The position numbers and the translations under genes were made by a program. From Raja brachyura (Eukaryota), in NCBI GenBank assembly GCA_963514005.1, contig OY740797.1, positions 19,964,001 to 20,028,000 on the forward strand: 64,000 nt of DNA. The letters are read 5' to 3'. The notes under the pieces were generated by a model, which worked only from the letters and a program-made list of their open reading frames with translations, made no database searches and was not told the origin of the DNA. Within the stretch, counting starts at the first letter, position 1. Every line of letters starts with the position of its first letter. Positions 17,426 through 46,151 of the stretch are shown here, in pieces.

Positions 17426-17777
17426 TCAACCAGAGCTGAACACGTTTTTCGGCATCTGCATACAATGGTGTCTGTCTTGTGCTTCTTGTGCGTGGCGGTG
17501 GAAAGATTGATGAAAACAGGGCCGCGACCTGAACGCTCTTACCTTGACCCCATTGCATACTTGGTAGATTGAAAGTGTTATCACTGCACCCTGCTTGATA
17601 TCCCTCTGCTTCGGCACCACTACCGAATTTCGGTGAATTACCGAACGCTTGTGCTTCCGGGTCATTATCAGCTTTCGCATTTTTGTGGTGTTGTTTATTG
17701 ATGCTGGGTAGGATGATATCTTCCCGGTTCCTTCGTGTATGTACCTTTTAATTTGCCAATTGTATTTGGTTGTATCA
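17426..17777 (-). CDS. IgSF gene A, putative terminal cytoplasmic exon
   Basis: Acceptor catcttttatag| is phase-2 compatible with the 43-nt exon. Frame is open for ~116 codons (SDTTKYNWQIKRYIHEG...LSIYQVC...SSG*). An internal donor at ~17745 is also possible. Confidence 0.4.
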
Positions 17778-18330
17778 CTATAAAAGATGGACCCGGAACA
17801 TTTAATGTGATTTTTGGAAAGTGCTAAACAGGTTAAAATGAGTACGCAATCTATTGTTAATTCTGGCAATGTGGATTGGCAATCGTCGCAATTAATGAAA
17901 TGCCCCAAAATGTCAGACGATTTACACTTTTAAGGTTATGAGATTAAATGTTTCTGAGGTGCATGTGTAATTAACTTTAATTATCACAATGTGGAGTCCT
18001 TACATATATATTCACGTCAATCAACGGATAACTGCAAAAGTTCCCACATTTATATCCACCCGCTACCTTCTCTCGTGTTTACAACACTGATGCACTCATT
18101 AATGGATGCTGAAAGTAGATTCACCGGGATCTTTAAGATAGGTATTGTAGGTATTATGGAAATAAAGAGTTAACGCGAGTAGAATAGTTTATTTATCTCC
18201 TAAGACATTCTAAGATTCTAGGGATGAACACATGCCCTTTGCTGACATGTAATCCTTCTTTTAGGCACTCTAAAGTCTAAGCTCTAAAAGTCTAAAGTAA
18301 AATACTCTCTTGTTTGAAAAAAAAAAAAAT

Positions 18331-18458
18331 CTGAAGAAGGGTCTCGACCCGAAACGTCGCCTATCTCCTTCGCTCCCTAGATACTGCTGCACCCGCTGAG
18401 TTTCTCCAGCTTTTTGTGTACCCTCGATTCTCCAGCATCTGCAGTTCCTTCTTTAACA
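18331..18458 (+). mobile_element. Penelope-derived repeat with intact hammerhead core, in a gene A intron
   Basis: CTGAAGA-A-GGGTCTCGACCC-GAAACGTC-GCCTAT, then the family body. No stem I partner upstream (A-run). Confidence 0.85.
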
Positions 18459-18764
18459 CGTTATTCACCCTGTCGTATTTGCTTGTATGGCTTGCTGCCC
18501 ATGAAGGTTGTACTTTGATGCCAATCGATATTGTCGCCCAAAGTAAGAACTCGCCCGGGCACCATATGGATATTTTATGCATAACCCATTGTTATAAGGT
18601 TATGTTTTATACATTGCCTTCTCGTCCTCTTAAAGGTGTGAAACACAATGGAATGTATCATTGATTGCAACGAAACGTTATAGGCCGCAGCTGTCATGTT
18701 ATACCTTAAAATCACAATGGAAATCAAACTGGGGATGGCTATCAGAGTAGTAGTGACCTAAAAC

Positions 18765-18807
18765 CTATTTTGCGCCAAAACAATCAAGATCTGCACACAA
18801 TTGTTTC
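18765..18807 (-). CDS. IgSF gene A cytoplasmic exon 1 (43 nt, phase 1 to 2)
   Basis: tctttacag|GAAAC...AATAG|gtttta encodes GNNCVQILIVLAQN. Same length and phases as the gene B exon at 37881-37923. Donor is weak. Confidence 0.55.
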
Positions 18808-19076
18808 CTGTAAAGATTTGGAACTGTGATGATGGTAACAAGTTGCAAATCATGAACAATAACCGATGGATACAACAAAAATATACAATGATTGAAATAT
18901 TGACATGGGAAGATGTAAGATTTATATCTTGAGATTTAATTTTGTCATTGTTAATGGTCAGCTTTATTCTCAATTGTTTTATTGTTTTTCAATCGAATAC
19001 GATGAACTGCCCTTGGTTTTTTTAAGCATAATTATGATTAAGACAGAGAATACTGTAAAATGTGTATAATTCTCAC

Positions 19077-19175
19077 CATTTTGTGCCTTTACTTGGAGTC
19101 TTATCAAGATAATGGCCAAAACTAAAATTGCCAAGCCACCCACTGCGCATCCGATAATTAGGTTTTTATCTGCGT
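19077..19175 (-). CDS. IgSF gene A transmembrane exon
   Basis: ag|...|gtgaga, 99 nt, DADKNLIIGCAVGGLAILVLAIILIRLQVKAQN. Homologous to the gene B TM exon. Confidence 0.88.
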
Positions 19176-19456
19176 CTTATGGATCAAGAGAAACCGGGAA
19201 AAAGTGAAAGATATAACATACAGAAATATATACACATTTAGGAATTTAGCGATAACACAGAACACGTCAATGGTTTAATAGCCTTTGAGCTTCTTGCTCC
19301 ATGATTGATTTGCGATTTTGAAACACTGATCTCTCATTACGAATAAACACGGGTCGTATCTAGCCATTGTTCCCGTGTTTGAGCAGCTGTATATTTAAAT
19401 TCTAACCAGGTTGGACATATACACCCGCTCTTGGCTGCAAGTACTGACAATCTTAC

Positions 19457-19752
19457 CTGTTTTGACGATGTAGCTGAGAGCTGTTGGCACCTCAAGGGAA
19501 ACATGAGATACCAAGCAGGTGTAAACGGCGTCGCCCCAAACAAGTTTAATTTCTTCCAAAAAATGGAAACCTCATACAATCCGTCTGAGCTTCTATTTTT
19601 TAGCGTTTCTATTCCGGTCAGAATTTCTTCGTTATTTCTCCGCCAGGAGATTTCTATTTTTTCCGGATAAAATCTCGCCGTTTTACATACAAGTTTCCGA
19701 GACTGCGATGAAGTTCCTTTAACCGGAATGATTTTCAACGGAGTTGGGGGAG
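19457..19752 (-). CDS. IgSF gene A C1-set exon with a 1-nt frameshift at ~19558-19563
   Basis: APPTPLKIIP...KLVCKTARFYPEKIEISW...DGLYEVS, then in a shifted frame FLEEIKLVWGDAVYTCLVSHVSLEVPTALSYIVKT. 296 nt where 297 is expected. Canonical ag/gtaaga. Confidence 0.9.
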
Positions 19753-21000: not shown

Positions 21001-21306
21001 CGAATACAGATAGCAGCGTGCCACTTCCATTTCCGATAGTTTGTTGCTGCTGTTTGATATAACAATAATACTTCCCGGAGTCTGCGACACTCAAATTCAG
21101 CAGAGTAAACGAACCGCTGGCCTTGTTTACATGAAATTGCTTTCTGCTGTCTGGCCCGATGAATGCATTCTCGCTCTCTCTCCACCAGTAGACGTCAGGA
21201 ATAACTTGTAATATGTGATATTTGCAGAACATGGAAACATTTCCACCTACGGCTTCATGCAAAACAATCGGGAATTGTTCCACCTTGCTTGACGATACTA
21301 TGGCGT
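21001..21306 (-). CDS. IgSF gene A V-set exon (germline-joined VJ type)
   Basis: 306 nt, phase 1-1, cag|...|gtaagt. VEQFP...NVSMFC...VYWW...SFTLLNLSVADSGKYYC...GNGSGTLLSVF. Confidence 0.93.
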
Positions 21307-21508: not shown

Positions 21509-21563
21509 CTTGCCAAAGTATACTCAGGAAAGCCATGTAGCTAACTGCAACCTCCGCAGACAT
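21509..21563 (-). CDS. IgSF gene A leader exon
   Basis: 55 nt, MSAEVAVSYMAFLSILWQ+G|gtacgc. Same size and phase as the gene B leader. Confidence 0.85.
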
Positions 21564-24500: not shown

Positions 24501-24652
24501 TGTACATGGTTCAGGTGTTATCCTTCCAGAGGTCTAACATTTAGCTAAATCCTGGTCCAAGACTCTCCCACTAGTGGAAACATCCTCTCCACCGTCACTC
24601 TATCCAGGTGTTTCACTATTCGGTAAGTTTCAATGGGGTTCCCTGTCATCCT

Positions 24653-27610
24653 GGTGAAAAGTAAAAGTGGCAGGCAGAAAAACCCAGGGCAAAAATCAAA
24701 AAGGGCCACTTATCAAAAAAATTGTATAAGGGGTAAGAGTGTTGTAAAAACAAGCCTGAAGGCTTTATGTCTCAGTGCAAGACGCATTTGTAATAAGGTG
24801 GATGAGGTGAATGTGCAGATAGTTATTAATGAATATGATATAGTTGGGATCACGGATACATGGCTTCAGGGTGACCACGGCTGGGAGCTGAACATCCAGG
24901 GATATTCAATATTCAGGAGGGATAGGCAGAAAGGAAAAGGAGGTGGAGTAGCATTGCTGGTTAGAGAGGAGATTAACGCAATATAAAGGAAAGACATTAG
25001 CTTGGAGGATGTGGAATCGATATGGGTAGAGCTGCGAACAAGGGGCATAAAACGCTAGTGGGAGTTGTGTACAGGCCACCTAACAGTAGTAGTGGAGTTA
25101 GGGATGGCATCAAATATGAAATTATAAATGCGTGCAACAAAGGTAAAACAGTTATAACGGGTGATTTCAATCTACATATAGGTAGAATTTGGGTGAATCA
25201 AATTGGCAGGGGTGCTGAGGAAGAGGATTTCTTGGAATGTATGCGGGATAGTTTTCTAAACCAACATGTAGAGGAACCAAGGAGAGAGCAGGCTATTCGA
25301 TACTGGGTAAGGAGTAATGAGGAAGGGTTAGTTAGCAGTCTTGCTGTGCATGGCCCCTTGGCAAGAGTGACCATAATATAGTTTTCTTCATTAGGATGGA
25401 GAGTGACATTGTTAATTCAGAAACTAAGGTTCTGAACTTAAAGAAAGGTAACTTTGAGGCGTGAGACGTGAATTGGCCAAGATAGTCTGGCAAGTGAATC
25501 TTAAAGGGTTGACAGTGGATATGCAATGGAAGGCATTTGAAGACTGCGTGGATGAACTACAACAATTGTTCATCCCAGTTTGGCAAAATAATAAATCAGG
25601 GAAGATAACAAGGGAAATCAGGGATAGTATCAAAACTAAAGATGAAGCATAAAAATTAGACAGAAAAAGCAGCCTACCAGAGGACTGGGAGAAATTCAGA
25701 GTCCAGCAGAGGAGGACAAAGTGCTTAATTAGGAAAGGGAAAATAGATTATGAAATAAAACTGGCAGGGAACATAAAAACGGACTGCAAAGGTTTTTATA
25801 GATATGTGAAGAGAAAAAGGTTAGTTAAAACAAATGTAGGTCGCTTGCAGTCAGAAACTGGTGAATTGAACATGGGGAACAAGGACATGGCAGACCAATT
25901 GAATAACTACTTTGGTTCTGTCTTCACTAAGGAAGACATAAATAATATGCCGGAAATAGCAGGGAACCAGGGGTCAAATGAGATGGAGGAACTGAGTGAA
26001 ATCCAGGTTAGCCAGGAAGTGGTGTTAGCTAAATTGAATGGATTAAAGGCGGATAAATCCCCAGGGCCAGATAGGCTGCATCCCAGAGTACTTAAGGAAG
26101 TAGCCCCAGAAATAGTGGATGCATTACTGATAATTTTTTCAAAACTCTTTAGATCCTGGGGTAGTTCCTGAGGATTGGAGGGTAGCTAATGTAACCCCAC
26201 TTTTTAAAAAGGGAGGAAGAGAGAAAACGGGGAATTACAGACCAGATAGTCTAACAACGGTAGTGGGGGGAATACTAGAGTCAGTTATTAAAGATGGGAT
26301 AGCAGCACATTTGGAAAGTGGTGAAATCATTGGACAAAGACAGCATGGATTTATGAAAGGTAAACCATGTCGGACGAATCTTATTGAATTTTCGAGGATG
26401 TAACTAGTAGAGTGGATAAGGGAGGACCTTTGGATGTGTTGTATCTGGACTTTCAGAAGGCTTTCGACAAGGTCCCACATAAGAGATTAGCATTCAAACT
26501 TAAAGCACACGGTATTGGGGGTTCATTGTTGATGTGGATAGAGAACTGGCTGTCAGACAGGAAGCAAAGGGTAGGAGTTAACGGGTCATTTTCAGAATGG
26601 CAGGCAGTGACTAGTGGGGTACCCCAGCAATTTACACGATATATTAATAATCTGGATGAGGGAATTGAATGCAACATCTCCAAGTTTGCGGATGACACGA
26701 AGCTGGGGGCCAGTGCTAACTTGAGGAGGATGCTAGGAGGCTGCAAGGTGACTTGGATAGGTTGGGGGAGTGGGCAAATGCATGGCAGATGCAGTCTAAT
26801 GTGGATAAATGTGAGGTTATCCACTTTGGCTGCAAAAACAGGAGGGTAGACTATTATCTGAACGGTGGCCATTTAGGAAAGGCGGAGATGCAACGAGACC
26901 TGGGTGTCATGGTGCACCAGTTATTGAAAGTAGGCATGCAGGTGCAGCAGGCTGTGAGGAAAGCGAATGGTATGTTGGCATTCATAGCAAAATAATTTGA
27001 GTACAAGAGCATGGAGGTTCTACTGCAGTACATGGTCTTGGTGAGGCCACACCTGGAGTATTGCGTGCAGTTTTGGTCTCCTAATCTGAGGAAAGACATT
27101 CTTGCCATAGAGGGAGTACAGAGAAGGTTCACCAGACTGATTCCTGGGATGGCAGGACTTCCATGTGAAGAAAGACTGGATAGACTCGGCTTGTACTCGC
27201 TGGCATTTAGGAGATTGAGAGGGGATCTTATAGAGACTTAAAAAATTCTTAAGGGGTTGGACAGGCTAGATGCAGGAAGATTGTTCCCGATGTTAGGGAA
27301 CTCCAGAACAAGGGGTCACAGTTTAAGGATAAGGGGGAAGTCTTTTAGGGCCGAGATGAGAAGATCATTTTCACACAGAGAGTGGTGAGTCTGTGGAATT
27401 CTCTGCCACAGAAGGTAGTTGAGGCTAGTTCATTGGCTATATTTAAAAGGTAGTTAGATGAGGCCCTTGTGGTTAAAGGGATCCGGGGGTATGGAGAGAA
27501 GGCAGGTACAGGATACTGATTTGGATGATCAGCCATGATCATATTAAATGGCGGTGCAGGCTCGAAGGGCCGAATGGCCTACTCCTGCACCTATTTTCTA
27601 TGATTCTATG
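24653..27610 (+). mobile_element. CR1 LINE (same subfamily as 5040-7985) inserted into an older antisense CR1
   Basis: Full EN+RT motif series and a (TTCTATG)-type tail. ATCCT is duplicated at 24648-24652 and 27611-27615. Confidence 0.93.
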
Positions 27611-28475: not shown

Positions 28476-28479
28476 GGGT

Positions 28480-29279: not shown

Positions 29280-30545
29280 AGGATCGGACAAGGTCAGCAT
29301 TGATTTATGAAGGGGAAATCAAGCTTTACAAATCTTCTCGATTTTTTTGGAATATGTAACAAGTAGAATGGATAAGGGAGAGCAGTGGGTGTGGTGTATC
29401 TTTTCTTTCAAAAAGCCTTCGACAAGGTCCCCCACAGGAGACTAGTGTGTAAAATTAGAATATGGTACGGGGGGTAGGGTAGGATAGAGAACTGGTTGGC
29501 AGTCAGAAACCAAAGAGTAGGATTTCACAGGTCCGTTTCAGAATGACAGGCAGTGACTAGTGGGGTGCCGTAAGGCTTGGTGCTGGGACCCCAGTTATTT
29601 ACGATATATATTAATGATTTGGATGAAGGGATTCAAAGTAACATTAGCACATTTTCAGATGACACAACGCTGGGTGGCAATGTGAACTGTGTGGAGGATG
29701 CTAGGAGAATGCAGGGTGACTTGGACAAGTTGATGTGAGGTTATCCACTTTGGTAACAAAAACAGGAAGGCAGATTATTATCTAAATTGCGTCAAGTTGG
29801 GAAAAGGGGAAATACAACGGGATCTGGGGGTCCTTGTTCATCAGTCTATGAAAGTAAGCATGCATGTACAGCAGGCAGGGAAGAAAGCAAATGGCATGTT
29901 GGCCTTTATAACAAGAGGAGTCGAGTATAGGAGCAAAGAGGGCCTTCTGCAGTTGTACAGAGCCCTAGTGAGACCACACGTGGATTGTTGTGTGCAGTTT
30001 AAGTCCCCTAATTTGAGGAAGGACATTCTTCCTATTGAGGGAGTGCAGCGTAGGTTTACAAGGTTAATTCCCGGGACTGTCATATGCTGAGAGAATGGAG
30101 CGGCTGGGCTTGTACACTCTGGAGTTGAGAAGGATGAGAGGGTATCTTATTGAAACATATAAGATTGTTAAGGATTTGGACATGCTAGAGGCAGGAAACA
30201 TGTTCCCGATGTTGAGGGAGTCCAGAACCAGAGGCCACAGTTTAAGAATAAGAAGTAAACCGTTTAGAACGGAGACGGGGAAACACTTTTTCTCATAGAG
30301 CGTTGTGAGTGTGGAATTCTCTGCCTCAGAGGGTGGTGGAGGCAGGTTATCTGGATGCTTTCAAGAGAGAGCTAGACAGGGCTCTTAAAGATAGCGGATC
30401 AGGGGATATGGGGAGAAGGCAGGAACGGCATACTGATTGGGGATGATCAGCCATGATCACACTGAATGGTGGTGCTGGCTCAAAGGGCCGAATGGCCTAC
30501 TCCTGCACCTATTGTCTATTGTCTATTGTCGATTGGCTATTGTCT
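29280..30545 (+). mobile_element. CR1 LINE, 5'-truncated RT and 3' UTR
   Basis: [41 protein letters not shown]; (TATTGTC)n tail. Confidence 0.9.
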
Positions 30546-30549
30546 CTTC

Positions 30550-30672
30550 CCTATCTCTATCTCTATCTTCTCTATCTCTACACTCTCTATCTTCTTCTCT
30601 ATCTCTATCTACATCTCTATCTCTATCTTCTCTTCTCGATCTCTATCTCAGTCTCTTCTTCTTCTCTATCTC
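30550..30672 (+). repeat. (CTCTAT)n microsatellite
   Basis: Imperfect hexamer array. Confidence 0.9.
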
Positions 30673-31189: not shown

Positions 31190-31360
31190 CTGGTGAGGTC
31201 AGGGCTGGGCGCTGGTGGGGCCGGGCGCTGGTGGGGCCGGGACCGGGCACTAGCGGGGCCTGGGTCGGGTGCTAGTGGGGCCGGGCACTGGTGCAGCTGG
31301 GCACTGATGGGACTGGGCGCTGGTGGGGATGGGCGCTGGTGGGGCTGGGCGCTGGGGGGG
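31190..31360 (+). repeat. GC-rich ~16-bp minisatellite (GGGC[CT]GGGC[GA]CTGGTG)n
   Basis: About 8 imperfect tandem copies. Confidence 0.8.
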
Positions 31361-32890: not shown

Positions 32891-35266
32891 ACACGTGCTT
32901 GGTTGTGCGATGACTTCTGAGTTAATTCTCAGATTTTCTTCATGTTAAGGTTTGACCACTCAATAATGTCTCTGTATTAAAATTGTGTGTCTTTTTTCAT
33001 CAGCAGCAAAGCGACATTGAGACGCAGTGAGCAGCAAAACGCAACAAGACGCCAGCAAGAAAAAACTGAACTCAATAAATCTCATCTTTAACTTTTAAAT
33101 TGTTGTTATATTTTAAGTTATTCACATTTTAAGCTTTAATAAATCCCTTTTCCACTTGCCGTGCCCGTCAGCTGCGCCTGCGCAGTAATAACTGCGTGTT
33201 CTACGTCAATGTGAACCCTATGGGCGGGAATGGCTGCACCGTCGGAGAGCTACTAAGAGTGGATGGGGGGATTGAGGGGGGATGGACTGAGTGCGCGGAG
33301 GGCGGGTGAAGGGCAGGGGGCGGAGAGGGGGGGCGGGGGGTGAGGGGGTGAGGGGAGGGGGATCAGGGGCATCACAACGGGAACCCGTCAGCCGCGCCCG
33401 CGCAGTTGAGGGCTATGGGTGAGTGGTGGAATATTGCGTTGGGGGACCAGGCCCCCCGTGCGACAATGGAAACCAATGCGCTCCATGGCTGGCAGCATTT
33501 TATACAAATGTTAAGCCAACTTCAATACCAAAACCTGTTCTTCCAGAACACAATTACACTTGATTAGCTGCGCCTGAAACTCCAATCGTTGTGGCGATTG
33601 GATAAAGACACGTGACTCCAATTTAAATCTAATCTTCCCAATCCATACATGTACTCCCACGTTTTCCAGAACATAATTACACTGACATCAAATTAAGTTT
33701 TATATTAATGGGAATCGATGCACCCTCTGTTTATCCTCCTTCGTTCCAGTGCAGTTGTGAAATTATGCATTATTTTCGGTGCCGCGAATTTATTTGTCCG
33801 GTTGGAGCCAATGTGTATTTCATAACAAGCATTTCATAACACATCGAGTCATTGATGGCTTTGAAAGGACAAATAGTTTAGGTAAGTGAAAATATATTCG
33901 TTATTAAAATTTGCGTAATTATCGTTTTCTTACAAGGCATCATTTAGCGGCAACATATCAAGATCGGTCTTTGCGAAGTTTTGATCAAAACACATCGACA
34001 AGATTGTGCTTTCTTAAAAGTTGTAAAGAGCGAGAGCAGAATTTAAGTTGCAGTCTCTGAAAAAACTGGACAATTTATGCCAAATAATATCCTGAGATGA
34101 AAATTATCATTTCACTTCCCAGGATCGTAGGTGCAATAGAGACCATCAATTCTTAAAAAGGCTGCAATAAACGATTATGAACCATACTACAAAACCTAAT
34201 TCATTACTAAACTTCAGCAACGACATGCATTTAGATTCTCGGCCTCTCACATTTATTGAGCTGTTTTCATCTGCATTCACTGCGCCGATGTTTGCTTTGT
34301 TTTGGGAAGCTGCAGAGCGGCATATATCACATCGTAAATTCCACTAGTTATTGTCTGGAAAGTAATTAAATTCCACTCGTTAATTCATTAACACGCATGA
34401 CGAAAATCAAAATTGTCATGAATTTATCAATTACCACCTTCAGTTTTTTTTAAAGGCAAATGCTCATTTTGGAGTCTGCGTATCACCAACTATGCCAGTA
34501 TTTACCGTCATCCACAATAGCCGTTTCAGAATTTAGACTTGGTCCGTATATGTGCAACCTAGTGGGTGAAAGGGAAGTACAGTATTGCAGTTCACCCATG
34601 CACCGACTACACTTTGTTATTGTGCTGCTTTAAAGTGTAGGTTTCGAGAGGGGGGGGGGGGGGGGGGGGGTTATATTTTAAATAGCTTAGGAGAGTAACT
34701 CTATTGTATTCGTCGATAGGATTCTCTGCACCCACTGCATCTGGTGGTGGAAGAGCTGAATGTTTAGGATTTGGCAGGGCCATTTTAATTGGATGGTGAT
34801 TCACTTCTTGGGAGATGAGGATAGTGCCCTCATCCAGGCAAGTGGAAAGTACCCAAACGCACGCCAAATTCCTTAGTTTAGATGTTGGAAGGGTCTTAAT
34901 ATGAGGAGTTGTTTTTAATTTGCCAAAGGAATATAACCATTAGCTCGTTTTTGTAGCCATGGTATCTACTGGACCATTTCGGTTGAATATCTGGTAACCC
35001 CCAGAATATTAATCGTCAGAGCCTCGATCTGCTATGCTATTGAAATACCAAATCTTTCTTGTTGGAAATAATCATTGTCTGGCATTGTTATGATTTGGAT
35101 GAGGTCGGCACATTCAGATTGTATACCTCTGTTATTTCCTCCGTTTTCCTTTTTGATTTACAGTCAACTTTAACGATAAAAGCGACACTTGACTAACAAT
35201 AGTTCCTTATTTAAATGCAAAACAAATTTCGCGTGAATGTTGATGTATACATTATTGGTGTCTCTT

Positions 35267-36220: not shown

Positions 36221-37880
36221 TTGAACAGCATTTCGATCTCGGCTGATAAGTGACTTTCATATTCAGCCTTTCAAGAAGGCACTCCATTTTCTTTGCAATT
36301 ATGGCGGGATATTACGCGGTGGCCCTACCATTAAGGCCTTCATCCAGAAAACGTGTCATAGAAAAGTACTTGAAAATGATGCTGCTTATCGACCTAGTTG
36401 GATAAATGCACATAATATTCCTAAGGGCGGATCTGATACGGTTAGCTGCAAGTTGTTAACTGCAATTATGAATTGGATTGAGCTTGAAGCAGACCCCTAC
36501 ATGCCTTGTCAAGGACGCAACTTCCACTATTATTCTTAAACATGCCTGGCAAACAGAGTAACTAATAGCGTTGCAGAGATTATCACTTGTTCTCATGCCC
36601 CTTCGAGGTATTCGTGTTCACTCCTAGCTCGCAATCAGAACCTGTGGCCCATGGTCACTCCTTTCTGCTCACTTCCCGACGCAGCAGCCATTGAGAGACC
36701 TAAAGTACTATTCCAACTTGATTTAGCTCAGGAACTAGATATAGGGACATAATGTCCTGCTAATCTGCTTGATTTGACAGGGAACAATCCAGATAAGGAT
36801 TGAAACAGGAAGTACAACCGATTTGTCTTGTCATAAGTAAAGGCGCAGCGTGCAGAAACAAGGAATTAATGCCAATGTTTATGTTACTAATTGGGGTCTT
36901 AGTTGATGTACTCAGCTCAAATTAGGGTAGAATAACAGCAACTTTACGAAATTCCGTATGTTCAAGGGCAGTGTACAACAGTTGTTCTTCTTGTAGCAAA
37001 TAAAAAAACAATTCACAATTGAACGTTAATTTATTTGGGGTTGTTCTGATTGAGTGAATACGGAGAATCAATTTCTACCTGAAGATATCAACTATCTAAA
37101 TGATATCATTCAAGAACGTTGCTTGAATAAGAGGGGATAGATTGGAATATTTTAAATTATTTTAAAGTATAACCTGGGATAATAGGACGAAATGTTGCCT
37201 TCCATGGTTCTGGGAAATATTCTTTCTTCAAACATCAGGGGCCATTGTCCGCGAGCTATCACGGGTGTTGAAAGTGCGACGTGTTTGTTCAATTGCATGC
37301 GGATCCGAAACAATTGAAGACCAGGTTTTGCTGCAGACTTGTTTTCGGTACAAGCATTAAATTGCACACGACTCGAAAAAAGGTTTTAATCAAAGTCGTA
37401 CAAAATTTCACCAAGTACTATAAGTTTCTATAATTTAATCATTTGTCAATAACTTCCAGGACTCCATTGGCAACCTATTGCCTATGTTCTTTCTCTAGCA
37501 TTCTGGATCATTCTACACACTTATATTTATTAGTTTCTCGCTACCTAATTACTTTTTGATTCTTCTCGCCAAAGTAAATAACCATATATGTCTCCACGCT
37601 ATACTCTATATGACGCATTTTTTAACGCATGCGCTTAACGTTTCTGATATGGAGTATATGACTGAAAGTACTATGCAAAAGTTTGAAAGGGAAATTTGAA
37701 TTGGCCAGATGATACATACTTCAACAGAGGCGTTGCCACAGACAGAGTATTTTTCTTCTACATAATGTTCTACGATATTTAGAAGATAGATTACATATGT
37801 TTTAATTGCTGAAACTAATACTTCGGCTCCGACTCCATTCCTTTATTCAAACATGAATGTAAATGGAATTTTGTGCTTAC

Positions 37881-37923: not shown

Positions 37924-40281
37924 CTTGGAAACAGAAAAGAAAATCACATCGAATAAAAATAATCAATTCAAATTAACTTACTCCTTTGATAGTAATTACA
38001 TTTATTTTGTACTAAAGTATGCCATACATAAGGCATATGTCTGTCTGGAGATGTTTAGAAGTCATCTAGTGCATTACACTCTCCTGTTCCTACCCTCAAT
38101 TTAATGGATCTTGACGCGACCGAAATTGCGTGAGGATGATAGCGTATCAATAGCCGGGTTATCTCTCACAATTCCAATTTAAATCAAGATCAAACGGACG
38201 ATACCAGATGGTCAATAAATTAACAACTGTTACCAATCAATAGAGAAACTCAAGCTCTAAATTATTATTTTATGTTGTTTGATCTGTTGGTGAAATTTGT
38301 CTCCAATCAGATTATGGAGTTTGACCTGGATTGTCAGTGGGAGTGAGGGGTTTGGTGATAACAGGGAATTGTAGAATGTTTAACTGCAGAAACTCTCCTG
38401 TAATCTCTTCAGACCAAATGGAGTTAAAAAGACTATCTTAAACTCATTGTGTAATGTGTTTCTCAGAACAGTGCACAATGTAACATTTTTTTCTAATTGT
38501 ACAATCATAACAGTGCGGCTGATTTGTTGTTTTTACTGTGGCAAACAGCTACACAAATTATTTAAAAGGGGAAGTACAATTGGATTAACTTTGTTGGTGT
38601 TTAGTTGGGACATTTTTGCTCCTGCTTTCTCTTCTTTCTTATTAAATATATACAAACTTATTATTGTGCTGCCACACAGCCAGCCAGTGCAACCCGCTAA
38701 GTATCCATCCTTCACTGTGAACCCGAGTCAAGTGTCAACAAAGTGATTATTGGAAGCATTGAGGGCGTTCCAGCTCCTGACATCTTCTGTTCCACAGGAG
38801 CCCTCTCTACCAGAGGCTGCTGCTTAGCAATTCAGAAATAGGCTGACCAGCTCTGCACCTGATTCCAACTCACAACTGTTTTTGGAGATAGGAGGTCAAG
38901 ATAGAATGTGTTTGTTATACAATTAGTTAAACAAACCATCTGCAGTCTGGAATTCCAATTTTCAGCATACTGTTGGAGCTGTCAGCCAGAACTATCAGGT
39001 GCTGACACGTTTCTGCATGCTAATATGAACAGATTGGGAATAATTAGTTTGTTTCTCGAATGAACGACAAAGAATATGATTTCCCAACTATGGAGAAAAC
39101 GTATGACAAATTTATATATTTAAATCGACACAGGGTGGCGTCCCGGGTTTTATCAAATCACGTGGGATGTGGACGTTTTGAAGTCTCGGACGTGTAGCTT
39201 TACTGTGGTATCATTAATCAGATGAACATTCAGAATATGCATAACGAGTCTCTGGAACAATGATTCATCTTTGATCCCATCTGTGAGAAAATGCATCAGA
39301 CATTCTCTAATCTGTCATGTTACCACAATTAAAATGATGCTTCTGAAAAAACAGCAATTGTCAGGCACAGTACAGGAAATGCAGCATTTTTGAGAGTTAA
39401 TTTAAAGCATAAATTGTTACTCTACCTCTTAAACGTCATTGCAATCATCCAATGTTGAACTAACACATGATTGTTTCTGGCCTAAAGTCCCATTTGCACT
39501 CTGAACATAATTTGTCTTTGCTACACCAGGGCAACAATAACCCTTAACTTAATCAATAGTTTGTATCGGTATTGTTATCATCGTGGTGCATATGTGTCTT
39601 TTTAGTGCTGACCTGCTAATGCCTCATTTATAACAAGAAATGAAAGTCAGATTCAGCTAAGACTTGATTTGTTGTGTGATGACTCGACAGATTACAGGAG
39701 GTGATGTCCAATGAGCTGTGCCCGGAGCCAGTAACTTGCTTTGGAGCTGTCTTTCTGTGACAGAACAGTATTTGATGCACAGATATCTAAAATATGGTAG
39801 AACCTTGTAAGACTGTGAAACCACCAAAGGGCTCTAGTCTTTCCATTGTCATAACACAAGGACCAAATGCATTTGAGGGCCATGCTGTGAGAGGAGTGGA
39901 ATAGGTTGCATTTGTTTAAGGAAAGCCTTTAATTTTATGAGATTCTGCAAACCTTAAAGAAAATGTAATTGCATGGCTTTCATCAACTTTCACGTGACTT
40001 TTCATTTGATGACATGTTGGCCATCGTGAAAAAGTGAAACCGTTGAGAATTGTTCGCTGATTCAATAATTTTATCCAATATGTATGGCCCAACACATCAG
40101 AATGCACAAATTGGAAATAAACTAGATATATCCACCTGTTGTTCATTAATGTTTGTTCATATCAATTATTATTGGGGATTCTGTGCAATACCACATTTAT
40201 CTCAGACCTACCGCATCAAAGAACCACACTTTGGGGTAGGAAAGATTATCATATCTTAGTGTCCCAGATGCCCCCAATGCA

Positions 40282-40965
40282 GTGGTGGCACAGTGGTGCA
40301 GCTGGTAGAGCTCCTGCCTCATAGCGCCAGAGACCTGGGTTTAATCTTGACTTTGGTTAGACAATAGACAATTGGTGCAGATGCCAGCATTGTGATCATG
40401 GCTGATCATCCACAATCCGTACCCTGTTCCTGGCTTCTCCCTATATCCCCTGACTCCGCTATCTTTAAGAGATCTATCTAACTCTCTCTTGAAAGCATCC
40501 AGAGAACTGACGTCCACCGCCTTCTGAGGCAGAGAATTCCACAGACCCCCAACACTCTGTGTGAAAAAGTTTTTCCTCATCTCCGTTCTAAATGATTTAC
40601 CCCTTATACTTAAACTGTGGCCCTTGGTTCTGGACTCCCACAACATCGGGAACATGTTTCGTGTCCCTAGCGTGCCCAAATCCTAAATAATCTTATATGT
40701 TTCAATAAGATCCCCTCTCATCCTTCTAAATTCCAGAGTATACATCTGTGTGTGTGGAATATGCACATTCTCCCTGTAACTGGGTGGGTTTCCTCTTGGT
40801 GCTCCAGTTTCCACATCCGAAAGACATGAGGGTTTGTAGATGCGCCATAATTGGCATCTATAAATTGTCCCCAGAGTGTAGGAAGTGAAATAGTGTGAAC
40901 AGGTGATCAATGGGCAGCATGGACTTGGAAGCTATAGGATCTGTTTCCATGCTGTATCCCTAAAT
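40282..40965 (+). mobile_element. tRNA-derived SINE (V-SINE/HE1-like) interrupted by an antisense CR1 3' end (~40356-40745)
   Basis: A-box/B-box-like head ggtggcacagtggtgcagctggtagagc...ctgggtttaatc. Core tgtgtggaatatgcacattctccctg...gggtttcc resumes after a CR1 segment (MFPML..SRTKGHSL.IRG..FRTEMRKNFFTQ). Confidence 0.75.
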
Positions 40966-41381
40966 TATAGAATCCCCAGTGGTGGCCTAGTGGCATTCAT
41001 ATGGGAAGGAGTAGATTTTGGAAGTAGAAAGTAACTTCCTATTGAAATGCCTACCATCAGAATAAACAGTCTTCAACTATTGGATTGAAGGGTCTTTCAG
41101 AAATGCTTTTGGAGACCAGTAATGGAAATGATGACCAGATAAATTTACAAAGTGTAAAAGATGATTAATTGCAGGTAAAATTGCTATCTAGATGTGCAAT
41201 AGATTGGTGAATAATTCGAATGGCGAGGCGAAATGTTTTTCACTACAAGTTATCGTTTAAAGTTCATAATGAATTATCAATCAGATAGACCTTTGAAAAT
41301 CTCGTATCTTTCTTAATGATCACTATGTTAACATTCGAATTTACAAATGTAAACACTTGTTGAAATAGGCAGCGCTCTTAC

Positions 41382-41483
41382 CATTCAATGGTTTGTACAT
41401 TAGTTCTGCAAAAATTATTAACAGAGCTAAGATTGCCAATCCGCCCTGTGCACACATGAGAATCAAGATAATGGAACTGGGAT
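41382..41483 (-). CDS. IgSF gene B transmembrane exon
   Basis: tag|...|gtaaga, 102 nt, DPSSIILILMCAQGGLAILALLIIFAELMYKPLN. Confidence 0.88.
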
Positions 41484-42449
41484 CTACAAGAACAAAATAT
41501 GAAAATGTTACAAAATATGCATATGTGAGTACGTTCATAAATAGTGCATGAGGTAGAGCATTTCAAAGATGTCTTTAAATCTTCACAGCGCATAAAATAT
41601 CCAAACAATACCAATTGCAAGTTCATGATGGGATTTCAAAATGGCTGCTTCCACGAAGGTCAGGTATTTCGATGAAAACCGTTTGCTTTTCTATTACAAT
41701 GCCACACCAGATAATGGAAATCAACCTCAACAAAACGCATCAGCCTTCTATATTTCTGGTTGAACACTGAATATGTGCCTTAACACGTTTTGCAGTGAGC
41801 GGTTAGCACAAGAAGATAACCCAAGACAGGTTATAAGACCATTATACATTTAACATATAAAATTGACACCAATCAACGTATTATGACATATTAGAGGGCC
41901 TGACCTAACAATAATCGATAAGAATGAATATCTCTCCCATATCAAGGCATCTATAGGTATCTCTCTTGGAATCTTATCTGGATCAGCAAGATTATGACTA
42001 TTTTATCTGACTATATGACTTTAGACTCAATCCACTCAATAATTTCTGGGGAAATAGGCCATTCACCTGGAAAACTATCAGCTAATTCATTGTTGGATAA
42101 CTTGCACGTGAACCGATTCATTCAGGGCACCACTGCATATTCCACTGGAGCGTCCAACAAATCCGCTATGGAATTGCCATATAATGCTCTTGCTATTGCA
42201 CTCGCTCTCGTAGCATTTACCTTCGTAGCAATACCCGCATGTACATTTTCCGGTTTTGTATAAGCACGTCGTAATTCCTTCTTACATAATCTATCATCTC
42301 AATTTTGAATGAAATACTTATTTTATATTCTCTCTTCTTTTCTATGGTTCTACCAAAAACAGGCACTGACTTTTAACAATTTCTTTGTCTGTATGGCATC
42401 GACACACCACTCCGAGCATATCATCCCATCCTTCAGCACCAAATATGCC

Positions 42450-42745
42450 TTTAGTTTAGTTTAGTTTAGAGATACGGTGCGGAAAAAAGGCCCACTGAGT
42501 CCGCACCGACCAGTGATCGCGCACATTAACACTATCCTACACACATTAGGGACCATTTACACTTATGCCAAGCCAATTAACCGACAAACTTGCACGTCTT
42601 TGTAATGTGGGAGGAAACCGAAGATCTCAGACAAAAATCCACGCGGTCACGGGGAGAACGTACAAACTCCGTACAGACGGCACCCGTAATAAGGGTTGAA
42701 CCCGGGTCTCCGGCGCTGCAAGCGCTGTGAAGCTGCAACTCTACG
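42450..42745 (-). mobile_element. tRNA-derived SINE (V-SINE/HE1-like)
   Basis: Minus-strand B box (gacccgggttcaaccc), core ggagtttgtacgttctccccgtgaccgcgtgg, (CTAAA)n tail. Confidence 0.8.
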
Positions 42746-43199
42746 TCTGCGTATATGTACGTCTACGTCTACGTCTATCGAAGTATGAGGAGCAGATATT
42801 TCTCCAATTACAGTTCCTGAGATTCAACGCAATTATTTATCTTCTTTGCCATAAATTCAGTTCTGGTTACACTTATGGACCACACGTGAATGCCTTTAAT
42901 AACATTTACATTTGGACTGCTTATCCCCCACTTTATTTACTTGCAAGTTCTTAATTCTGCCATTTGCCACCTAGAGACCTTGCCATTCCTGATCAGATTC
43001 TCTTAATCTACGCATCATAAGAGCGAGGTCTCGCAAAACACACCACATGCCCGAGGACAAATCCCATCACCTATCAAATCATTGTTTTTTTTGTCATGTT
43101 TATTCCATATTAATTTGATTTTCAAATTTGTAATTTGTTCTCATATCACTGCCTGACTTTCTTGCTCCTAATGTCTACAAACTCGTTCGTCCGTGCGAC

Positions 43200-43505
43200 T
43201 TCTATGAAAGGGTCTCGACCCGAGGCAGAGTTTCTTCCCACAGCCCATCAGGACTGTAAACTCTGATCTCACCGGGGAGTAATTATTGTTGTGTCTTTTA
43301 AAAATATATAAATACTGGTTCTGTTCTGTTCTGTTCTGTTGTTCTGTTGTTTTGCACAATCCCGCAGGTATTATCACTTTCATGTCACTGTACATCTTGT
43401 ATGTGTATGTGACAAATAATGTGGACTTGACTTGACCCATTCCTTATTTCGATGGATGCTGCCTCGCCCGCTAAGTTGCTCCAGCATTTTGTGTCTACCT
43501 TCGAC
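43200..43505 (+). mobile_element. Penelope/hammerhead repeat split by a Rex/Babar-like 3' fragment (~43223-43435)
   Basis: agggtctcgacccga | gagtttcttcccacagcccatcaggactgtaaac...(CTTGA)n | cccattcc...gatgctgcc...ccagcattttgtgtctacc. Confidence 0.65.
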
Positions 43506-43822
43506 TTTTATGAAATGTTTTTTGTCCCTTTATCGTTTTCCAGTCGATTTCCTCCCAATGCAATTATCTCCCAAGCATTAAAGTGCGGCATTCTATTATT
43601 CTACTTCACGTTGCTTCTTTTAAAATTGTCTTAAGGTAGTCATTGTGCAAGCCTTTAATCGTCTGCCCATTGGGATGCTTAATGCTGGTACATTGAAGCG
43701 TTGGTGTAAAAATGATTCACCTTAACCTTTCTCCCAATATTACTGCTGTAGATCTAATTTTTTATTCCGCTATTCTGATCAGCTACTAACTCATTCTCAA
43801 CTGCAAATATTCCCAGTCTTAC

Positions 43823-44116
43823 CTGGCTCGACGATGTATGTGAAGCTGGCCGGTACCTTAAGGGAGATATGCGATACTAAACAGGTGTATACATCTTGAG
43901 CCTGGGCAGGCTGCGCTATTTCCAAAAAGCTAGAAACTTCATACAATCGGTCCGCATTCCTGTATTTCACGGTTTCAATGCCGGTTAGAATTTCCACATT
44001 ATTTTTTCTCCAGAAGATTTCTAATGTCTCTGGATAAAACGCATCTGTTTTACAAACGAGTTTTGGAGCAGCCAAACTTTCTTCAAGTGAAACAATTTTC
44101 AAAGGCGTTGGGGAAT
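43823..44116 (-). CDS. IgSF gene B C1-set exon (intact)
   Basis: 294 nt, phase 1-1. DSPTPLKIV...KLVCKTDAFYPETLEIFW...DRLYEVSSFL...VYTCLVSHISL...YIVEP. C1 hallmarks CxxxxFYP and YTCxVxH. Confidence 0.93.
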
Positions 44117-44197
44117 CTTAAGCAGAAGAAAAAAGTTATATTGCATGTTTCCATTACACTTCAGTGAGCTATATTATAATTATATATTACGTTTGTT

Positions 44198-44835
44198 AAG
44201 AAAGCGAATGGTATGTTAGCATTCATAGCAAAAGGATTTGAGTATAGGAGCAGGGAGGTTCTACTGCAGTTGTACAGGGTCTTGGAGTATTGCGTACAGT
44301 TTTGGTACACCTAATCTGAAGAAATACATTCTTGCCATAGAGGGAGTACAGAGAAGGTTCACTGGGATGTCAGGACTTTCATATGAAGAAAGACTGGATA
44401 GACTCGGCTTGTACTCGCTAGAATTTAGAAGATTGAGGGGGGATCTTATAGAAACTTACAAAATTCTTAAGGGGTTGGACAGGCTAGATGCGGGAAGATT
44501 GTTCCCGATGTTGGGGAAGTCCAGAACAAGGGGTCACAGTTTAAGGATAAGGGGAAAGTCTTTTAGGACCGCGATGAGAAAAACATTTTTCACACAGAGT
44601 GGTGAATCTGTGAAATTCTCTGCCACAGAAGGTAGTTGAGGCCAGTTCATTGGCTATATTTAAGAGAGAGTTAGATGTGGCCCTTGTGGCTAAAGGGATC
44701 GGGGGTATGGAGAGAAGGCAGGTACAGGATACTGAGTTGGATGATCAGCCATGATCATATTGAATGGCTGTGCAGGCTCGAAGGCCGAATGGCCTACCAC
44801 TGCACCTATTTTCTATGTTTCTAGGTTTCTATGTT
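44198..44835 (+). mobile_element. CR1 3' fragment in the V-C1 intron of gene B
   Basis: ORF 44238-44639 is the CR1 C-terminus. (TTTCTATG) tail. TGTTAA at both 44194-44199 and 44832-44837. Confidence 0.9.
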
Positions 44836-45601
44836 AACCATGGATTTTTTTTGAACACTGGATATAAAAACTGAGCGATTTTAGACATTATACCAGGAGG
44901 GTTAATATTTGAGTAATATGGGAGAAAGGCGCCAATGTTCTGAATGGAAATGACTGGCTTTCTATGTTAACTTTGGCGTTTGGGACATTATCGGCATTTC
45001 TTTTATTGAAATGAATGGTATTGAAGTAGAGATGTCACAGATTTCTCGAGTCGGGGGTAGGGTGTAGTTACGTGCATTTATTACATTTCGGTGCTCAATT
45101 CGTTGGTCAATTGATTGTTCAGATCTTGGGATGGAGATTTTCAATGGTGCATATTTCACTATGGGAATGTTCAGAGTTCAATGCTACTGCTGTAACACGT
45201 TCATGCGTCGAGTCAAATATAAGATTTGGATATCGAAGCATCAGAAAGATACCTGGGCAATGAATGAACACGGGAAGCAGTTGTACGCTGAAGTGGAATA
45301 TCAGTGATGTTGCTGATACGTAATATCCTAACTTTAATGTTGCATTAAACTAACTTTACCTAATCTAGGGAAAAGTTGCTAAAATTGTTCTCCATTTCTT
45401 TCCTCGGTGAAAGGGAAATGGACTTTCTACCACAGCTATTCATTACAGTTCAAGACGCAGTTCAAGTCGACCATTCCAGTATCTTTCTTGGGATTTATTA
45501 GCACCTGGATTTTTCCAAGTTGGAACATTTTATAAACAACGCATTTATATGTAAATGACAGAGAACTGAAAATCTCTTAATTTTCGAACATGTACACTCA
45601 C

Positions 45602-45907
45602 CGAACACAGTGAGCTGACAGCCACTTCCATTCCCGATGTGTTGATTCTGGTGCTTTGCTTGACAGTAATATATTCCCGAGTCTGCAACAATGACATTAT
45701 GGAGAACAAATGTTCCCCTTCCGCTACCTACATGAAATTGTTTTCTCGTATCTGGTTCCAATAATGTTCTCATGCCTTCTCTCCACCAAAAAACAGAAAT
45801 AGTATCTTGCGATATGGGAAATTTGCAGAACATGGTAAAGTTTGCACCGATGGGGACATCTGCATCATTAGGAAATTGATACACTGAGTTCGAAGATACG
45901 TCCACAA
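45602..45907 (-). CDS. IgSF gene B V-set exon (germline-joined VJ type)
   Basis: 306 nt, phase 1-1, cag|...|gtgagt. VYQFP...NFTMFC...VFWW...VADSGIYYC...GNGSGCQLTVF. Confidence 0.93.
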
Positions 45908-46096
45908 CTGCCGAAAATTAAGGAAGAAATTAGTTGCGTATACTGGATAAGGTAAATAATAGCAAATTAATACAAAACAATCGTGGAAGAAAGGCACCCG
46001 AATTGGCGCATTTTTGCTATATCTGCCGGATGTAAACAGGAACAAAATGTAAAATATAAATTGCAATTCAGCAACAACACAAATACCTAAACTCAC

Positions 46097-46151
46097 CATG
46101 CCAAATTATACCACATAGCGCCATGTACCGTACAGGAAATGTCGCCAACAT
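46097..46151 (-). CDS. IgSF gene B leader exon
   Basis: 55 nt, MLATFPVRYMALCGIIWH+G|gtgagt. Confidence 0.87.

Follow-up and report, generated by a model that had tools for sequence, protein, structure and literature searches.

The window, a 64,000-nucleotide stretch of the Raja brachyura genome (contig OY740797.1), carries two antigen receptor-like genes on the minus strand with leaders 24.6 kb apart (Table 1). A sequence-only reading had proposed two paralogs on one strand about 25 kb apart, with leader, V, C1-set, and transmembrane (TM) exons of the sizes given in Table 1, and all of these were found. The 43-nt exon that it placed in each gene was not confirmed; three AG/GT-bounded open candidates lie below the TM exon of copy 1 and seven below that of copy 2, none resembling another or an exon of the relatives described below. 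The range it assigned was also too short, the terminal coding exon of copy 1 (16874-16725) lying beyond it. The window contains no further copy of a V, C1, or TM exon of this kind. Beside the two genes the window holds only retroelements and no MHC marker, so the proposed MHC linkage finds no support there.

Table 1. Exons of the two receptor-like genes and their boundaries
Feature	Position	Strand	Description
Copy 2 leader exon	46097..46151	-	55 nt, MLATFPVRYMALCGIIWH + 1 nt, phase 1; ATG at 46151, GTGAGT donor
Copy 2 V exon with built-in J-like G strand	45602..45907	-	306 nt; CGGCAG acceptor, GTGAGT donor
Copy 2 C1-set exon	43823..44116	-	294 nt; TTAAG acceptor, GTAAGA donor
Copy 2 transmembrane exon	41382..41483	-	102 nt; hydrophobic scan and AG/GT bounds
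Copy 2 candidate cytoplasmic exon (weak)	36948..36989	-	42 nt, (E)EQLLYTALEHTEF, ITIM-like LLYTAL
Copy 2 terminal coding exon	34277..34354	-	TITSGIYDVIYAALQLPKTKQTSAQ, stop; ITIM VIYAAL
Copy 1 leader exon	21509..21563	-	55 nt, MSAEVAVSYMAFLSILWQ + 1 nt
Copy 1 V exon with J-like strand	21001..21306	-	306 nt; TGGCAG acceptor, GTAAGT donor
Copy 1 C1-set exon	19457..19752	-	296 nt, frame-shifted at T6 run 19563-19558
Copy 1 transmembrane exon	19077..19175	-	99 nt; hydrophobic scan and AG/GT bounds
Copy 1 terminal coding exon	16725..16874	-	TKDDKFYVALCRF...VPYADDNVLKKERSWESKL, stop; tyrosine motifs degenerate; outside earlier range

The two copies share 52.5% amino acid identity over 99 residues of the V domain, 61.5% over 65 and 52.9% over 34 residues of C1, and 57% over 28 residues of the TM exon. 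Each V exon includes a J-like strand (IGNGSGCQLTVF and IGNGSGTLLSVF), as the sequence-only reading had noticed, and in agreement with it no recombination signal sequence (RSS) was found near either V exon. The sole heptamer-like string there (CACTGTG at 45612) is part of the codons for L-T-V, and no nonamer follows it at a spacing of 12 or 23 nt. The next domain is a true C1-set domain in both genes, again as proposed (Pfam C1-set: copy 2, E 4.5e-12; in-frame part of copy 1, E 1.6e-7).

Both loci belong to a multigene family of cartilaginous fish. At E<=0.001, 602 library proteins match, with V-C1-TM relatives among the best 150. Chondrichthyan names are carried by 33 of 34 hits in one search and by 46 of 47 in another (46 shark, ray, or chimaera names and one unnamed), and no hits fall between E 6.6e-40 and 0.001. 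The RefSeq labels of these proteins are inconsistent (SIRP-alpha-like, B7H6-like, Ig-lambda-like, tapasin-like), and no author-given name for the family was found in the literature searched, which bears out the suggestion of a diversified, largely uncharacterised group of chondrichthyan receptors. The family has many members in 18 named species, which gives no support to a reading of the pair as a unique pre-RAG relic. The family invariants are W-W, D-G-Y-C, G, P, C, F-P, W, G, C, and H, and the glycines of G-x-G vary little or not at all across 27 members. In trees built from family members only, the V exons of both copies fall inside a 28-row batoid clade (SH-aLRT 97); copy 2 and the database ORF P0001 are sister to 17 myliobatiform sequences (SH-aLRT 95), and copy 1 with ORF P0034 adjoins Pristis P0178 and Hemitrygon P0179. 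The C1 tree has the same pattern, weakly (71-93). Tails of the relatives carry two to four motifs of the type xAYASLN, LTYAALQL, and xxYAEV.

The V exon of copy 2 matches Pfam V-set (E 2.8e-7) and is 92% identical to P0001 (E 6.1e-59). Its TM exon is similar to TM segments of the family, and its leader peptide weakly resembles the start of P0178 (E 0.43). The terminal exon, which moves the lower end of the gene to 34277, was detected by tblastn with the tails of relatives (E 0.007-0.01 when the whole window was searched, E 3.5e-5 when the search was confined to the 8.4 kb below the TM exon); the tail has one ITIM and stops before the last tyrosine motif of the relatives. The candidate cytoplasmic exon has a good acceptor, a GTAAAG donor, and phase 1 entry; it matches relatives' tails only weakly (E 1.3 and 2.6), and its phase does not allow a direct join to the terminal exon. 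The frame from the TM exon into the ITIM exon is putative, as are any intermediate cytoplasmic exons in the 7 kb of repeat-rich DNA between them.

Copy 1 has the same architecture but is frame-shifted as assembled, and to that extent the proposed pair of genes is not supported. Its V exon is 84% identical to P0034 and 66% to P0178, and matches Pfam V-set at E 2.7e-7 with a query that lacked the first 14 codons and included 44 nt of intron. The leader weakly resembles those of several family proteins, of the MSEKFTVSYMALLAITW type (E 0.09-0.7 each), the in-frame part of C1 is 76% identical to P0178, and the TM exon is 85% identical to the TM of the same protein. The terminal exon, found by tblastn with relatives' tails (E 0.03-0.06), is open, and its acceptor (AAATTACTTTCACAG) is like that of copy 2 (TTAATTACTTTCCAG); its tail motifs are KFYVAL and VPYADD. 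Alignment of the two C1 exons reveals one 3-nt gain and one 1-nt loss in copy 1, the loss lying at the T6 run; that 296 is not a multiple of three had gone unmentioned in the sequence-only reading. All family invariants are found in copy 1, spread across two frames; the frame as entered misses YTCLVSH and the second C1 cysteine, and the assembled sequence meets a stop five codons into the TM exon. Judged from its predicted translation, copy 1 as assembled can yield neither a folded C1 domain nor a membrane anchor. The frameshift reflects either a pseudogene or a homopolymer error; provided that the T6 run was sequenced correctly, a pseudogene of recent origin is the likeliest reading of copy 1.

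A single low-depth contig suggests that copy 2 may be spliced. This contig of run X1 (234 letters, depth 2.9) aligns with C1 from 43904 onward and ends its match exactly at 44116, and its other 35 letters account for a depth of 0.51, from X1 only, in the bin with the last bases of the V exon; the V-C1 link is a matter of arithmetic, since the joint is absent from the 15 listed of 114 joint rows. The contig's kind is guessed and it may be DNA, such as a retrocopy; it has a 17-nt deletion in the C1 exon, and its organism label differs from that of the best DNA matches. Matches of runs labelled 'RNA?' are almost wholly to interspersed repeats, and the leader, TM, and tail exons have no RNA support in these runs and the X1 data searched. 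It could be that both loci are decaying remnants in a retroelement-rich stretch and that neither makes a receptor: copy 1 is frame-shifted with degenerate tail motifs, copy 2 has introns of 2.3 kb and 7 kb filled with repeats and its tail stops short, the 17-nt deletion is present in the one contig that looks spliced, and no skate RefSeq protein of this subfamily was found. We consider this unlikely, however, since copy 2 keeps all family invariants, four open main exons, and consensus splice sites, both V exons are kept open in contigs of a related species (92% for copy 2 in P0001, 84% for copy 1 in P0034), and the defect of copy 1 is one base in a homopolymer.

Among solved structures, sequence profiles indicate that the V domain is nearest to IgNAR and TCR V domains and the V-C1 unit to Ig chains, UrIg2, and SIRP-alpha. 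With a V-only profile, the best single-domain PDB matches come from IgNAR V (2.3e-14) and from TCR V-delta (4.5e-9) and V-alpha, and the family profile ...YYCqvkhqqqkiGnGsGtlLtv aligns to rearranged IgNAR V ...YICRAMGTNIWTGDGAGTVLTV. The G strand is thus almost the J-encoded strand of IgNAR; unlike IgNAR and TCR V genes, the window genes have no V/J split and no RSS, and no somatic diversification by rearrangement. An AF2 model of the copy 2 V domain (pLDDT 73.7) is placed by Foldseek closest to IgNAR V (TM about 0.7), PD-1, CD79b, and TCR V-alpha, and the predicted C1 domain (pLDDT 80.2) closest to MHC class II membrane-proximal domains (TM about 0.8).

The commonest RefSeq label of the relatives, 'tyrosine-protein phosphatase non-receptor type substrate 1-like', raises the possibility that these are true SIRP genes, orthologues or co-orthologues of mammalian SIRP-alpha/beta/gamma. 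SIRPs likewise encode the N-terminal V domain and its J-like G strand in a single exon and continue with C1-set domain(s), TM, and, in the inhibitory form, a tail with several ITIMs; some relatives (P0177, P0196, and P0183) are V-C1-C1, the tails of relatives hold multiple ITIMs as in SIRP-alpha, and long- and short-tailed forms occur within both families. The whole-family profile matches the ectodomain of SIRP-alpha (1.7e-30) and SIRP-gamma (8e-26) over V and C1. SIRP-alpha nevertheless ranks behind Ig heavy chains and UrIg2 in the whole-family, C1, and V-C1-C1-member searches and does not feature in the top 60 PDB matches to the V-only profile; in these profile comparisons the two domains do not both nest inside SIRP or tapasin. 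The window genes have a single C1 domain, the TM segment of short-tailed relatives ends in D/E-H where SIRP-beta has a lysine, all named hits are chondrichthyan, and no protein identified as non-chondrichthyan appeared among the 47. SIRP orthology or co-orthology is considered unlikely.

The G strand GNG(S/T)G presumably resembles that of NKp30, another non-rearranging VJ-type V domain; mammalian NKp30 is not known to have a C domain. PRARP genes, reportedly described by Fu et al. in 2019, are said to occur in chicken and other bony vertebrates. One short isoform of a relative, Pristis P0116, is auto-named NCR3-like, the nurse shark has eight NCR3 genes according to the UrIg2 paper (PMC12227049), and PRARP is cited as a family of VJ genes in an MHC paper; the window genes might accordingly belong to one of these published families. 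The V-only profile, however, finds no NKp30 structure within its top 60 PDB matches, and the family hits include no author-given NCR3 name, nurse shark protein, or bony-vertebrate protein. Section 7 of the UrIg2 paper, moreover, uses NCR3 as a VJ-domain gene only and not in its C-domain trees (PMC12227049). These points are not decisive, and membership in the NCR3 or PRARP families appears distinctly unlikely.

UrIg2 is the best-matching solved chain of V-C1 layout (1.6e-37 over V and C1 with the whole-family profile, 7.6e-25 vs 1.4e-16 for SIRP-alpha with the C1 profile, and 6.1e-11 with a single C1 exon). UrIg and UrIg2 likewise have a split leader, a single-exon VJ without RSS, and true C1 domains (PMC12227049), a configuration that could make the window genes a third branch of this non-rearranging antigen-receptor lineage rather than SIRP-like regulators. 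According to the same source, however, UrIg is a secreted product of the liver with three C domains, and UrIg2 has nine to eleven C domains (PMC12227049), whereas the window genes combine a single C1 with a TM exon and a tail of ITIM type and belong to a multicopy, fast-diverging family. The V domain of UrIg2 does not reach the top 60 matches of the V-only profile, and UrIg2 leads SIRP-alpha by a small margin when the query is a V-C1-C1 member (61.5 vs 56.1 bits). We regard a third UrIg branch as very unlikely.

Our preferred explanation, to which we give a probability of about 0.7, is that both loci are members of a discrete, unnamed chondrichthyan family, that they are old paralogues, that copy 2 encodes an inhibitory receptor, and that copy 1 is a likely pseudogene. 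Members of the family would be membrane receptors of type I in which a split leader is followed by a V domain of VJ type, joined in the germline, then by a single C1-set domain (some relatives have two), a TM segment, and a tail in the cytoplasm. Copies 1 and 2 probably separated before the living batoid orders split, copy 1 grouping with short-tailed sawfish and stingray genes, and copy 2 appearing to represent, in the skate, a lineage with ITIM-rich tails that has expanded among stingrays and mantas. Copy 2 looks intact and, by analogy, inhibitory: it would be made as a surface receptor whose V domain may bind a putative ligand via CDR-like loops, with C1 serving as a stalk and possible pairing surface. 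As in SIRP-alpha, phosphorylation of the tail ITIM VIYAAL may recruit SHP-type phosphatases and so damp leukocyte activation.

The two receptor gene loci, referred to here as copy 1 and copy 2, lie on the minus strand with their leaders 24.6 kb apart. Gene models were built from six-frame ORFs and direct reading of the sequence, with exon ends set by script, and give the same order on a single strand in both copies: leader, V, C1, TM and a tail with tyrosine motifs (see table). The sizes of the leader, V, C1 and TM exons proposed in the sequence-only reading were recovered exactly; all four kinds of exon have AG/GT borders in both copies, the 55-nt leaders exit in phase 1, and the V, C1 and TM exons are entered in phase 1. 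Pfam V-set matches have E values of 2.8e-7 for the copy 2 V exon and 2.7e-7 for that of copy 1, the second obtained with a query missing 14 codons and extending 44 nt into the intron. The C1-set matches have E values of 4.5e-12 (copy 2) and, over the part of copy 1 that is in frame, 1.6e-7. The main exons of both copies are real, and a window-wide search returned no V, C1 or TM exon beyond them. The copies are old paralogues (V domains 52.5% identical in protein and 72% in DNA; C1 domains about 58% and 68%).

Features of the two receptor genes and of the retroelements around them (window positions)
Feature	Positions	Strand	Remarks
Copy 2 leader exon	46151-46097	minus	55 nt
Copy 2 V exon	45907-45602	minus	306 nt
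Copy 2 C1 exon	44116-43823	minus	294 nt
Copy 2 TM exon	41483-41382	minus	102 nt
Copy 2 candidate exon	36989-36948	minus	42 nt; LLYTAL; weak
Copy 2 terminal exon	34354-34277	minus	TITSGIYDVIYAALQLPKTKQTSAQ, then stop; ITIM VIYAAL; matched by relatives' cytoplasmic tails
Copy 1 leader exon	21563-21509	minus	55 nt
Copy 1 V exon	21306-21001	minus	306 nt
Copy 1 C1 exon	19752-19457	minus	296 nt
Copy 1 TM exon	19175-19077	minus	99 nt
Copy 1 terminal exon	16874-16725	minus	TKDDKFYVALCRF...VPYADDNVLKKERSWESKL, then stop; matched by relatives' tails, E 0.03-0.06
Retroelement, DIRS-like layout	512-4835	minus	RVT_1 ORF, E 8.7e-22, then integrase SAM-like (tyrosine-recombinase type) ORF, E 1.8e-7
LINE fragment	5061-7878	plus	endonuclease and/or reverse-transcriptase ORFs
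LINE fragment	12425-14536	minus	endonuclease and/or reverse-transcriptase ORFs
LINE fragment	24633-27241	plus	endonuclease and/or reverse-transcriptase ORFs
LINE fragment	49692-52217	plus	endonuclease and/or reverse-transcriptase ORFs

The V exon is unbroken in both copies, running from strand A through YYC-x8-IGNGSG(C/T)xL(T/S)VF and ending at a consensus donor. Near the two V exons there is a single heptamer-like string, CACTGTG at 45612; it falls within the L-T-V codons, with no nonamer 12 or 23 nt away, and no heptamer-nonamer pair occurs in or near either V exon. The proposal of a J-like strand joined in the germline without an RSS thus stands, with V through the J-like strand in one 306-nt exon. 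A profile made from V domains alone aligns the J-like strand (iGnGsGtlLtv) with TGDGAGTVLTV, the strand that J encodes in a rearranged IgNAR V from a shark, so that the term germline-joined VJ is supported by a computed result. The copies resemble rearranging Ig and TCR genes in placing a VJ-type V domain directly before a C1-set domain, but differ from them in holding V and J in one exon rather than in separate segments with RSS. Copy 2 carries a cysteine directly after the GxG of the J strand (GNGSGCQLTV; 45618-45620, minus strand), where relatives have T or S; P0001, an ORF of a related species, retains it (GNGSGCLL). An unpaired cysteine at this place could form an interchain bond.

The pair of genes put forward in the sequence-only reading holds as far as its exon sets go, but copy 1 is broken as assembled. 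Aligned to that of copy 2, its C1 exon has gained one codon and lost one base at a T6 run (19563-19558). With a length of 296 nt the exon is unable to hold phase 1, and because of the base loss strands F and G drop out of the entering frame, YTCLVSH being legible in the next frame only. The entering frame leaves C1 in the wrong phase and meets a stop five codons into the TM exon, and as assembled copy 1 cannot yield a folded C1 domain or be anchored in the membrane. Either copy 1 is a pseudogene of recent origin, or the missing base is a sequencing error in the homopolymer.

The 43-nt cytoplasmic exons of the sequence-only reading could not be confirmed. Three open AG/GT candidates (copy 1) and seven (copy 2) lie below the TM exons, none of them alike or matching relatives' tails; copy-to-copy comparison of the stretches downstream of TM by blastn and tblastx yielded no cytoplasmic-exon match, and enumeration of 40-46-nt AG/GT exons gave many candidates with no criterion for picking one. 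Small cytoplasmic exons between TM and last exon were looked for in both copies and not found. Terminal exons, by comparison with relatives' cytoplasmic tails, were located in both copies: that of copy 2 is matched at E 0.007-0.01 when the whole window is searched and 3.5e-5 for the stretch below the TM exon, and the acceptor contexts of the two are nearly identical (TTAATTACTTTCCAG and AAATTACTTTCACAG). With these exons located, the genes extend over about 11.9 kb (copy 2) and about 4.8 kb (copy 1), and the range first proposed (17426-46151) proves too short, since the last exon of copy 1 falls outside it.

A regular-expression search for ITIM-like motifs returned VIYAAL, LLYTAL, two implausible matches and nothing else. 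Copy 2 has a single ITIM, VIYAAL; the terminal exon that holds it would be joined to the TM exon by a predicted splice. The corresponding tyrosine motifs of the copy 1 tail are decayed (KFYVAL and VPYADD). A mid-membrane lysine is absent from the TM exons of both copies.

To find relatives, the copy 2 V exon was searched against 1.84 billion cluster representatives, giving 602 proteins at E<=0.001; besides long multi-Ig proteins, the specific matches were of 135-420 aa. From the best 150 of the 602 matches, 27 were retrieved, each having one or two matched stretches and a length of up to about 420 aa; the other 123, nearly all long multi-Ig proteins, were excluded. Most of the 27 share the layout leader-V-C1-TM-tail, and some family members have two C1 domains. 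Chondrichthyan (shark, ray or chimaera) names are attached to 33 of 34 and 46 of 47 matches, the remaining one in each case being an unnamed Logan ORF; at least 18 shark, ray and chimaera species are named, Amblyraja and Leucoraja among them. Relaxing the threshold to 0.001 brought back those 47 proteins and no others, leaving the E range from 6.6e-40 to 0.001 empty; within the reach of a word-limited search the family is discrete.

Automatic names for these proteins conflict: SIRP-alpha-like is the commonest, alongside NCR3 ligand 1-like, Ig lambda-like, TCR beta-like, class II DP-alpha-like, PD-L1-like, CD276 homolog, tapasin-related-like and NCR3-like. The ESM Atlas, queried with the V exon, gave generic V-set clusters only, the top automatic name being "putative Antigen receptor (Fragment)". 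A literature search of limited coverage found no paper on the family, which may already carry a name in print, possibly in work on shark NCR3 or PRARP, on the primordial immune complex or on B7H6/NKp30.

In the 27-member alignment the invariant features are W-W after strand C, D-x-G-x-Y-x-C, the GxG glycine, the P of PPTPL and, in C1, C, F-Y-P, W, G and C-x-x-x-H. Copy 2 keeps every one of them, as does copy 1, with its last C and H in the shifted frame only. In some relatives the tail holds between two and four tyrosine motifs (xAYASLN, TVYAQTK, LTYAALQL and xxYAEV); others are short-tailed and close their TM segment with D/E-H. This conserved acidic-histidine pair reads IIVDHV, IIVEHL, IIFDHV or IIMDHF in the short-tailed members P0050, P0097, P0108, P0181 and P0081; in classical activating partners that TM position is taken by a basic residue. 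The division into long and short tails recalls paired inhibitory and activating receptors, an analogy of layout.

Trees of the V domain (61 rows, 100 columns) and of C1 (about 100 columns), both unrooted and from quick searches, place the two copies. In the V tree both fall inside a batoid-only clade (SH-aLRT 97). Copy 2 and P0001, a Logan ORF 93% identical to it over 95 tree columns, are sister to 17 stingray and manta (myliobatiform) genes with support of 95, several of which bear long ITIM tails. Copy 1 and a second Logan ORF (P0034; 85% identity over tree columns) adjoin a sawfish protein (P0178) and a stingray protein (P0179), both short-tailed. The C1 tree shows the same arrangement at weak support (71-93). 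By this placement both copies nest within the family; the two named skate proteins among those retrieved, P0196 and P0203, belong to another, distant subfamily.

Kinship to known proteins was gauged by profile searches of all PDB sequences, in place of reference trees. The whole-family profile matched an IgA1 heavy chain (1.6e-40), UrIg2 V-C1-C2-C3 (1.6e-37, the alignment spanning V and C1), the SIRP-alpha ectodomain (1.7e-30), SIRP-gamma (8e-26) and light chains (about 1e-24). The C1 profile ranked IgA1, UrIg2 (7.6e-25), a light chain and SIRP-alpha (1.4e-16) in that order, and the single C1 exon matched IgA1 (6.3e-12) and UrIg2 (6.1e-11), followed by MHC class II beta-2 and CD276. For the V-only profile the top single-domain match was IgNAR V (2.3e-14), followed by pIgR domains, TCR V-delta, V-alpha, CD79b and amphioxus VJ-C2; NKp30, SIRP and UrIg2 are absent from the best 60 of its 669 PDB matches. 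AlphaFold models of the copy 2 domains gave similar neighbours: for V (pLDDT 73.7) the best Foldseek matches are IgNAR V, PD-1, CD79b and TCR V-alpha at a TM score of about 0.7, and for C1 (pLDDT 80.2) they are MHC class II membrane-proximal domains at about 0.8.

Membership in a described family was weighed for SIRP, UrIg and NCR3. The predicted ITIM tail (VIYAAL) and the layout of copy 2 are SIRP-like, but SIRP has a V and two C1-set domains, against one C1 exon in each copy. SIRP-alpha ranks below Ig CH and UrIg2 in three PDB profile or sequence searches, a ranking of UrIg2 and SIRP-alpha that is not firm because the V-C1-C1 member P0177 scores 61.5 bits against UrIg2 and 56.1 bits against SIRP-alpha. 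Mammalian NKp30 consists of one VJ-type V domain and is not known to have a C domain, and both copies differ from NKp30/NCR3 in having a C1 exon after the V exon. With UrIg and UrIg2, as defined in PMC12227049, the copies share a split leader and a single-exon VJ. That paper describes UrIg as secreted, with three C domains, and gives UrIg2 nine to eleven C domains; the copies differ from both in having one C1 exon each. UrIg lies in the MHC class III region and UrIg2 beside IgH/TCR-alpha-delta. MHC linkage had been raised as a possibility for the two genes; the 64-kb window contains no MHC or other marker gene. For neither copy is membership in SIRP, UrIg or NCR3 demonstrated; both are built like one antigen-receptor chain and are SIRP-like in layout and predicted tail.

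Transcription was approached by aligning four contig sets of presumed RNA kind to 40201-46200. Almost all matches fall on interspersed repeats (40.4-40.8, 42.4-42.8, 43.4-43.6 and 44.2-45.0 kb); short LINE 3' tails repeated in the copy 2 introns (40341-40910 and 44238-44639) took nearly all aligned contigs. A single contig touches an exon in this region (run X1, 234 letters, depth 2.9). It matches copy 2 C1 from 43904 to 44116, exactly the predicted acceptor, with three mismatches and a 17-nt deletion (43933-43949). Its 35 leftover letters account for a depth of 0.51 (2.9 x 35 / 200 = 0.51), seen in X1 only, in bin 45601-45800, which holds the end of the copy 2 V exon (45602). As weak evidence, the contig resembles what V-to-C1 splicing in a near-identical gene would give, the joint being read from depth arithmetic. 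Alternatively, the X1 run may be DNA rather than RNA, and the contig then possibly a retrocopy; the organism label of the run is unlike that of the best DNA matches. The 17-nt deletion would break the reading frame, and since the deleted piece is without GT..AG ends, it seems to be genomic in that organism's copy rather than a product of splicing.

Retroelements fill the window outside the two genes. A 93-nt repeat occurs in the copy 1 TM-to-tail intron (18330-18422) and again at 48395-48487 (93.5% identical). Between the two genes lies a G+C-rich block (30400-32000; GC 0.567, compared with about 0.40 in its surroundings) that contains serine/leucine simple repeats and, on both strands, overlapping ORFs rich in Pro/Gly. 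Positions 8788-8946 are 159 N, an assembly gap or mask.

Copy 2 most likely encodes a surface receptor. Its V domain would bind a ligand, and its ITIM (VIYAAL, perhaps with LLYTAL) would draw in phosphatases of the SHP type, in the manner of SIRP-alpha and other receptors with ITIMs. According to PMC12227049 and PMC10751288, the relatives sought for the antigen-receptor precursor are genes that do not rearrange and that combine a VJ-type V with a C1 domain. The TCR/light-chain layout, a V domain nearest IgNAR and TCR V, a G strand near the NAR J and a C1 nearest Ig and UrIg2 are the grounds for asking whether this membrane-bound family with one VJ and one C1, rather than the multi-C UrIg and UrIg2, is the closest living relative of the gene split by the RAG transposon; we consider this improbable, at somewhat less than one chance in ten. 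If it were true, the family would be the innate, ITIM-signalling stock that gave rise to antigen-receptor chains.

The interpretation of the loci as VJ-C1-TM receptor genes was largely right, although they are two members of a large family and not a unique relic. By themselves the two copies are an annotation gain, not a discovery; the window contributes two well-delimited skate members, and it is the whole family that merits phylogenetic and expression study. The dynamics of the family are on view in this stretch, with ancient paralogues adjacent to each other, one seemingly intact with an ITIM and one newly broken; the two copies fit the birth-and-death pattern that is typical of immune receptor clusters.
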